This document shows, one piece after another, positions 13,961 through 14,681 of a stretch of DNA of 64,000 bases. The stretch is from Rhina ancylostomus. Its lineage: Eukaryota. How positions within the stretch are numbered: position 1 is the first letter of the stretch; each line of letters begins with the position of its first letter. The stretch spans positions 79,086,820-79,150,819 of the forward strand of contig JARFYF010000112.1 of NCBI GenBank assembly GCA_030265395.1. Reading direction: 5' to 3'. Both the position numbers and the translations under genes were made by a program. The notes beneath the pieces were generated by a model. It was given only the letters and a program-made list of their open reading frames with translations, ran no database searches and was not told where the DNA came from.

Positions 13961-14080
13961 TTATATACACCGAACTGTTGACCGTAAAATGCGATATGCA
14001 GCAAAAACACGGTAGCCCTCCAAGGGTGCTGGAGACAGACAGACCTTATGCATTTTACGGTCTCGGCATGGTGTATATAA
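13961..14080. repeat. Local inverted repeat (arm B 14050-14080 with arm C 13961-13992) enclosing the ECS
   Basis: Two perfect blocks: ttatatacacc (13961-13971) with ggtgtatataa (14070-14080), and gaccgtaaaatgc (13980-13992) with gcattttacggtc (14050-14062). Confidence 0.9.
13995..14025 (-). promoter_or_regulatory. Editing-complementary sequence (ECS) for the Q/R site
   Basis: 13995-14004 (tatgcagcaa) is the exact reverse complement of exon 14331-14340. Pairing extends without gaps over 31 nt (14340-14310 vs 13995-14025): 22 Watson-Crick, 6 G-U, 3 mismatches. It lies +331..+340 from the Q/R adenosine and has the UUGCUGCAUA core of the GRIA2 ECS. Confidence 0.88.
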
Positions 14081-14292
14081 GTTATTCAGATAGCTGTGTG
14101 AATGACATTGAGAATAAGCCACTTGCACATTTTAGCACCGTGGCAGAGTGATGATTGAATGGGTGGATCTTACCGCGCTGGTATGGATATTAAAGCAAAA
14201 TTTGTTGGGGAGCGAAATTAAAAGTAAAGGTGGAATAAAAGTAACGTATATGCACCATGGCATCAGTTTTTGACCATAAAATGCACAAAGGT
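14043..14292 (-). repeat. Imperfect intronic inverted repeat (arm A ~14242-14292, arm B ~14043-14084) nested inside the exon-ECS duplex
   Basis: Arm A transcript ACCUUUGUGCAUUUUAUGGUC...CAUGGUGCAUAUACGUUA pairs with arm B UAACUUAUAUACACCAUG...GACCGUAAAAUGCAUAAGGU. Same architecture as the GRIA2 intron 11 inverted repeat. Confidence 0.85.
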
Positions 14293-14310
14293 AATGTGAT
14301 AATGACAAAC

Positions 14311-14681
14311 CTTGGTGAAATATCGCATCCTTGCTGCATAAAGGCACCCAGAGAAAACCAGAGACTATTAAATATCCCAAACTCATTAGGTGGCTCAGTA
14401 TTTTGGGGATCTCGTCCTTCTTCATTTTCTTCCATATGCCATTCATAAGGACTGAATCTGCTGACCAGGAAAAGGACTACGCTGACTCCAATGTAGGCGA
14501 AGACTATGCACATCCAAATCTCATAAGCCAAAGGGTCCAGAAAAGAGAACACTCCTGGTTTGGATTTTTGGGGCTTCTTTATCATTATTGAAATACCAAG
14601 ACTCATGAAAGGTTTGGAAAAGTCAATGACTTCTTCTCGAACCAAAGTTATAGTGAGTGGTGCAACAGCAATATCAGCTCT
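14311..14681 (-). CDS. GRIA3: GluA3-like coding exon (exon 11 equivalent: end of S1, M1, M2 pore loop with Q/R site)
   Basis: 371 nt, tccag|AGAGCT...CCAAG|GTTTGT, phase 0/2. Translates [123 protein letters not shown](R). RADIAVAP is GluA1/3-type and RDPQ..PPNEF is GluA3-type. The next exon (SLSGRIVGG) was not found in the window. Confidence 0.96.
14334..14336 (-). other. Q/R site codon (genomic CAG = Gln; editable A at 14335)
   Basis: Transcript reads TTT ATG CAG CAA GGA (FMQQG); the first Q is the channel Q/R position. Confidence 0.95.

Follow-up and report, generated by a model that had tools for sequence, protein, structure and literature searches.

At the Q/R (glutamine/arginine) site of the AMPA receptor pore loop, RNA editing is held to be a property of a single subunit. 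Restriction of this editing to GluA2, which leaves GluA2 alone able to make AMPA receptors impermeable to Ca2+, is treated as a cornerstone of synaptic physiology (PMC3324117, PMC9479739), and GluA2 mRNA is again named as the one selectively edited in a 2026 paper (PMC13520880). The GRIA2 substrate is an imperfect inverted repeat that starts at the 3' end of exon 11 and continues into intron 11; its arms are conserved, its spacer is little conserved and dispensable, and the structure has been connected to the splicing of that intron (PMC3553965). [quoted passage not shown] For mouse Gria2 the endogenous ECS has been printed as an 11-mer (PMC7045468), and for zebrafish gria2-alpha the ECS-blocking morpholino has been printed as a 25-mer (Li et al. 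2014, PMC4018279). Here, we describe a cassette of this kind in a 64,000-nt stretch of the genome of Rhina ancylostomus (assembly GCA_030265395.1, contig JARFYF010000112.1, positions 79,086,820 to 79,150,819 of the forward strand). The whole stretch is called the window, and positions are counted from its first letter. This is a real and intact cassette of GRIA2-like form, probably homologous to the GRIA2 editing substrate, while the gene that carries it is, judged by likeness to reference chains in PDB, GluA3-type rather than GluA2.

In GRIA2, the exon of the pore loop has a glutamine codon close to its 3' end, followed by a nested repeat with a spacer. The same arrangement is found on the minus strand of the window, where the parts of the cassette are as follows:

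14334..14336, minus strand: Q/R-site codon, a genomic glutamine; the candidate edited adenosine is 14335, 25 nt ahead of the last base of the exon
14310..14340, minus strand: exonic arm of the predicted editing duplex (inverted repeat I1), paired with 14025-13995 in the minimum free energy (MFE) fold
13995..14025, minus strand: intronic arm of the predicted editing duplex; core ECS at 14004-13995, +331 to +340 from the site
14242..14288, minus strand: 5' arm of the nested imperfect inverted repeat, delimited from repeats I2 and I3 and the folds
14085..14241, minus strand: spacer separating the repeat arms; in the folds it is largely unpaired or has weak pairing
14046..14084, minus strand: 3' arm of the nested imperfect inverted repeat, delimited from I2, I3 and the folds
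13961..13992, minus strand: short stretch copying part of the 5' arm in direct orientation, immediately past the ECS, delimited from repeats I5 and I9 and an alignment

A first-pass annotation of the window had proposed this cassette, and its description of the letters was borne out throughout. The glutamine codon with an A at 14335 is read directly on the minus strand. Nucleotides 14340-14331 and intronic 14004-13995 are exact reverse complements (10/10 nt), the latter lying at the claimed distance of 331-340 nt downstream. The repeat finder returned the two arms as I1 (13995-14025 / 14310-14340), 31 nt long and 71% complementary (22 Watson-Crick pairs), which is the longest of the 11 inverted-repeat pairs listed in 1 kb. 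Pairing the arms by hand gave 22 Watson-Crick pairs, 6 G-U pairs and 3 mismatches, the same count as had been given for a gapless 31-nt duplex. The nested imperfect repeat said to bring the arms together is listed as I3 (14046-14062 / 14272-14288, 17 nt, 88%) and I2 (14067-14084 / 14242-14259, 18 nt, 89%), and both are used by the MFE fold. The window thus holds, in a pore-loop exon, a glutamine codon that is genomic and has an editable A, a perfect ECS across from that site a few hundred nucleotides into the next intron, and an inverted repeat whose arms and spacer reach from the end of the exon into the following intron (the arms being judged in this sequence alone), as a GRIA2-type substrate does.

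The MFE fold of 14400-13940 (461 nt, -113.7 kcal/mol) includes the I1, I2 and I3 helices. In this fold the exon end is joined to its intronic complement by an unbroken run of 17 pairs, followed by more pairs, atop the nested hairpin. Folded by itself, the intronic hairpin (14307-14030) reaches z = -3.07, with 0 of 200 shuffles as stable, and is clearly non-random. How often would a complement of the site be met by chance? A hand calculation for a 10-mer of 6 A/T and 4 G/C at about 38% GC gives ~1.2e-6 expected perfect 10-nt complements per position, ~0.001 per kb and ~0.017 over the 14.3 kb of the intron inside the window. An Rfam scan of the intron (12800-14307) returned five matches, all with E > 3 and far under the gathering scores, a blank that is uninformative because Rfam holds no family for the GRIA2-type structure.

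The published ECS strings were compared by eye with the ECS stretch of the window, not with whole introns. The mouse Gria2 11-mer equals 14005-13995 at 11/11 letters (PMC7045468). Relative to rodent GRIA2 the layout is the same, with the ECS lying 16 nt farther off (+331..+340 versus +315..+324; PMC3553965). The zebrafish gria2-alpha morpholino, designed for another paralogue in another species, equals the plus strand of 13995-14019 at 21/25 letters (84%), and two of the four differing letters fall within the 10-nt core (PMC4018279). An identical run of 10 letters in this comparison spans one mismatch of the duplex and four of its G-U pairs. Base pairing by itself does not explain why letters should be fixed at such positions, which favors common descent or copying over independent origin. 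The ECS region thus resembles the GRIA2 of other vertebrates, and intron sequence that matches mouse letter for letter and zebrafish GRIA2 at 84% over these stretches should be either selected or a recent copy of a selected sequence.

The window is the interior of a single AMPA-receptor gene on the minus strand, with no flanking gene inside it. Exons were located from the list of open reading frames (ORFs), a motif scan and direct reading of splice boundaries and phases. The five coding exons claimed by the first-pass annotation all exist; each has AG/GT boundaries, and the phases are compatible. Their numbers, 7 to 11, are our assignment by presumed analogy with the mammalian GRIA genes. Each exon was searched separately, unjoined, against PDB chain sequences, and the best bit score per paralogue was taken among the matches listed; for exon 11 the query was the first 110 codons only (14681-14352). 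The exons and their scores are:

57633..57800, minus strand: exon 7-like, amino-terminal domain (ATD), AG/GT boundaries and frame read; GluA3 90.1, GluA1 83.4, GluA4 81.0, GluA2 80.7 bits
40362..40466, minus strand: exon 8-like, found by direct reading; GluA4 48.5, GluA3 44.2, GluA2 32.5 bits, GluA1 not among the matches listed
27954..28061, minus strand: exon 9-like, linker between the ATD and the ligand-binding domain, boundaries and frame read; GluA3 38.5, GluA2 28.0, GluA4 26.0, GluA1 22.4 bits
19717..19923, minus strand: exon 10-like, S1 of the ligand-binding domain, boundaries and frame read; GluA3 129.7, GluA4 127.4, GluA2 119.0 bits, GluA1 not among the matches listed
14310..14681, minus strand: exon 11-like, end of S1, M1, M1-M2 loop and M2 pore loop including the Q/R position, with 124 codons, starting and ending in phase 0; GluA3 216.5, GluA4 213.9, GluA2 213.9, GluA1 213.7 bits (14681-14352)

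That the gene encodes an AMPA-type receptor is plain from GluA matches with E from 2.6e-12 (the 35-residue exon 8-like query) to 6e-64 (exon 11), and the similarity to GluA1-4 spans the ATD, S1, M1 and the loop. Among the GluA1-4 reference proteins it is closest to GluA3, which scores best in four of the five exons and has the highest sum of best bits (519.0, against 496.8 for GluA4 and 474.1 for GluA2). GluA4 is best in one exon and GluA2 in none, so the sequence does not behave as GRIA2. GluA2 stands behind GluA3 by 9.4, 11.7, 10.5, 10.7 and 2.6 bits in exons 7- to 11-like, 45 bits in total. From the exon scores and their sums, the gene as a whole is GluA3-type. The statement of the first-pass annotation that all five exons are GluA3-type holds for four of them, the fifth (40466-40362) scoring best with GluA4. 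Its overall interpretation, a GRIA2-style cassette in a GRIA3-type gene, stands in that the cassette is GRIA2-like and the gene is closer to GluA3 than to GluA2 in every discriminating exon; it has to be qualified for exon 11, which is close to non-diagnostic. The M1-M2 loop was rejected as a paralogue marker, as a search with the loop only ties GluA2, GluA4 and GluA3.

An exon encoding M3 (exon 12) was not found in the window with two M3 motifs in six frames. With that exon outside the window, the intron that follows 14310 exceeds 14.3 kb. Eight runs of N occur in the window, none of them between 8454 and 25960, which puts exons 10 and 11 together with the intronic element on unbroken sequence. 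Elsewhere, the N run 40490-40589 lies 23 nt upstream of the acceptor of exon 40466-40362, and the N run 27843-27872 lies about 80 nt downstream of exon 28061-27954.

The region around the site was also looked for in sequencing runs, as the share of sampled 31-letter words of 13700-14900 that each run contains; 24 runs were listed. Six larger runs of unstated kind, under four organism labels, contain 0.42-0.93 of the words. The highest share (0.93) belongs to one DNA-like run, possibly the source sample, and those under the three other labels contain 0.42-0.76. A further 14 small runs, guessed to be RNA and carrying 10 organism labels, contain 0.23-0.42, the exon making up 0.31 of the stretch. 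Three raw RNA runs were matched by species label only, and one more small run contains next to none of the words. None of the 24 is recorded as an RNA source. The presence of 0.23-0.93 of the words in runs under 14 organism labels means that near-identical sequence exists in several of the labelled organisms.

How might such a cassette act? The course of events that we favor, with rather better than even confidence, is that the pre-mRNA of this GluA3-type gene folds through the cassette, that A 14335 is edited by an ADAR2-type enzyme to give an arginine codon, and that the R form is less permeable to Ca2+. The cassette would be homologous to that of GRIA2, either through inheritance from a gene ancestral to the two paralogues or through a conversion that copied it from GRIA2, and the intron sequence, being so well kept, would be under selection. 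Before splicing, the outermost helix would set the exon end and the editing site against the ECS about 330 nt downstream. The ADAR2-type enzyme would then deaminate A 14335 within the duplex, before removal of the intron, so that the mature mRNA would carry an arginine codon. By analogy with mammalian GluA2(R), the presence of GluA3(R) would make receptors less permeable to Ca2+ and less subject to polyamine block (PMC3324117, PMC9479739). Whether the sequence is selected or was recently copied, in either case the pre-mRNA should present A 14335 in a duplex to an ADAR2-type enzyme. As for history, it is conceivable, although we give it somewhat less than even credence, that the Q/R cassette predates the split of GRIA2 and GRIA3, was inherited by both, was lost from GRIA3 in the line leading to mammals, and has been kept and used in the present lineage, which would then have two edited subunits, GluA2(R) and GluA3(R).

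Several observations weigh against the editing of A 14335 in a GluA3-type transcript, and they fall on the use of the cassette and on the identity of its host. The 461-nt fold is only modestly more stable than its shuffles (z = -2.21; 1 of 100 as stable), and its MFE structure has an ensemble frequency of about 0. Next to the ECS, 13980-13992 offers a rival pairing of 13/13 with 14050-14062 (I5), and the copy at 13961-13992 also gives a perfect 11-nt pairing with the 3' arm (14070-14080; I9). Pairing by this copy could occupy the 3' arm, leave the ECS looped and compete with the editing-competent fold. One study reports having seen no editing of GRIA2 in the liver, muscle and spinal cord of two sharks (PMC8659423), a sign that a codon may be intact without being edited in all tissues or lineages. 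Together with the link between the GRIA2 structure and intron 11 splicing (PMC3553965), the modest z of the full fold, the competing I5 pairing and the shark result would suit a cassette that is intact and yet little used or not used at all, the transcript staying Q or being edited weakly or in some cells, with the hairpin kept, for example, for splicing control. We think this unlikely, given that the core is perfect and has the same letters as the functional mouse ECS, that all the helices are present, and that an unselected intron would not remain so close to mouse and zebrafish GRIA2. Least credible of all is that the complementarity is a meaningless chance match. Short inverted repeats are indeed common (11 pairs in 1 kb), but I1 is the longest found, only about 0.001 perfect 10-nt complements are expected per kb, none of the 200 shuffles was as stable as the intronic hairpin, and the agreement with the published GRIA2 ECS in letters and spacing is close; we attach next to no probability to it.

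With respect to the host, exon 11 is nearly non-diagnostic (GluA3 216.5 versus GluA2 213.9 bits), the exon 8-like sequence favors GluA4 (48.5 versus 44.2 bits for GluA3), and orthology is judged from likeness to PDB reference chains. The M1-M2 loop, on which the first-pass annotation had relied, gives a tie when searched alone, with GluA2 nominally first (GluA2 53.0, GluA4 52.7, GluA3 52.6 bits). The exon 11 stretch also departs from GluA3 in loop length, having 110 residues like GluA1, GluA2 and GluA4, where the PDB GluA3 chains have 112; the two-residue surplus of the latter may be peculiar to the reference species. As exon 11 barely discriminates, the cassette-bearing exon cannot be assigned to a paralogue by itself, which leaves room for local gene conversion or mis-assembly. 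In that event GRIA2 would be the source of exon 11's 3' part and of the first stretch of the intron, by conversion or by mis-assembly of the contig, and the cassette would not be old in GRIA3. The near identity of exon 11 across the paralogues fits such an origin, as do the GluA2-like loop length and an ECS region very near the GRIA2 of distant species. It is nonetheless distinctly improbable in our estimate: there is no assembly gap from exon 10 (GluA3/4-type, 129.7 versus 119.0 bits for GluA2) to the ECS, the DNA-like run, which is possibly the source sample itself, contains 0.93 of the words across the exon-intron region, and exon 11 still has GluA3 on top in spite of a two-residue gap. A real conversion, moreover, would still mean that a working cassette sits in a gene of GluA3 type. 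Could the gene simply be the GRIA2 orthologue, and the cassette the ordinary known one? Every feature of the cassette is GRIA2-like and GluA2 nominally leads the loop-only search, but with GluA2 best in 0 of 5 exons and 45 bits below GluA3 overall this is very improbable. A cassette that is probably edited, in a GluA3-type gene, is the reading that we retain.

Other features of the window lie apart from the cassette. The ORF fragment 2407-2748 on the minus strand matches a reverse transcriptase (Pfam RVT_1, E 4e-14) and is the remnant of an intronic retroelement; the adjoining ORFs 2097-2375 and 5546-5773 have no Pfam match. An interspersed repeat with an 83-nt core occurs five times at 67-83% identity (21695-21777, 49444-49526, 52010-52092, 55966-56048 and 59341-59423), and 191-nt copies of the same family start at 49395, 51961 and 59292. 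Its core resembles what we take to be the conserved core domain of short interspersed elements (SINEs) of fishes. Two longer ORFs that cross copies of this repeat have no Pfam match, and ARAGORN found no tRNA in 20000-64000. Finally, 43120-43420 is a purine/pyrimidine-rich tract of low complexity, in which ORFs on opposite strands carry long Glu-Arg and Ser-Leu repeats.

What would an edited GluA3 mean? The rule that only GluA2 is edited at Q/R would be a mammalian rule and not a vertebrate one, and the animal would offer a natural experiment on how a second R-subunit affects receptor assembly, trafficking and plasticity. The editing structure would either date from before the separation of the paralogues or have moved between them; were the former true, the editing event would have arisen before the vertebrate genome duplications. 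The first-pass annotation had stated that mammalian GRIA1, GRIA3 and GRIA4 go without Q/R editing, in agreement with a review (PMC3324117). In zebrafish the gria3 genes are edited, and the sites discussed in the extracts of the papers concerned are other than Q/R (PMC4670233, PMC8096273). A literature search found no description of a Q/R ECS or of Q/R editing in GRIA3 in open papers, most subscription journals and supplementary site tables lying outside it, and with moderate confidence we regard a Q/R cassette in GRIA3 as new to the literature.

Two known systems of glutamate receptor editing remain to be set beside this locus. Editing at the R/G site occurs in GRIA2, GRIA3 and GRIA4, so that GRIA3 pre-mRNA is already an ADAR substrate in vertebrates (PMC3324117, PMC9479739, PMC8096273). 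It differs from the editing considered here in that its site precedes M4, outside the window, in that it uses another, short exon-intron hairpin, and in that it affects recovery from desensitization and not Ca2+ permeability. Q/R editing of the kainate receptor genes GRIK1 and GRIK2 is nearer in its outcome, for it changes glutamine to arginine at the same position of the pore. However, the double-stranded RNA structure of GRIK1 and GRIK2 differs from the GRIA2 one and probably arose, at least in part, by separate evolution (PMC9479739), and the structure in the window is of the GRIA2 type, not of the GRIK1/GRIK2 type.

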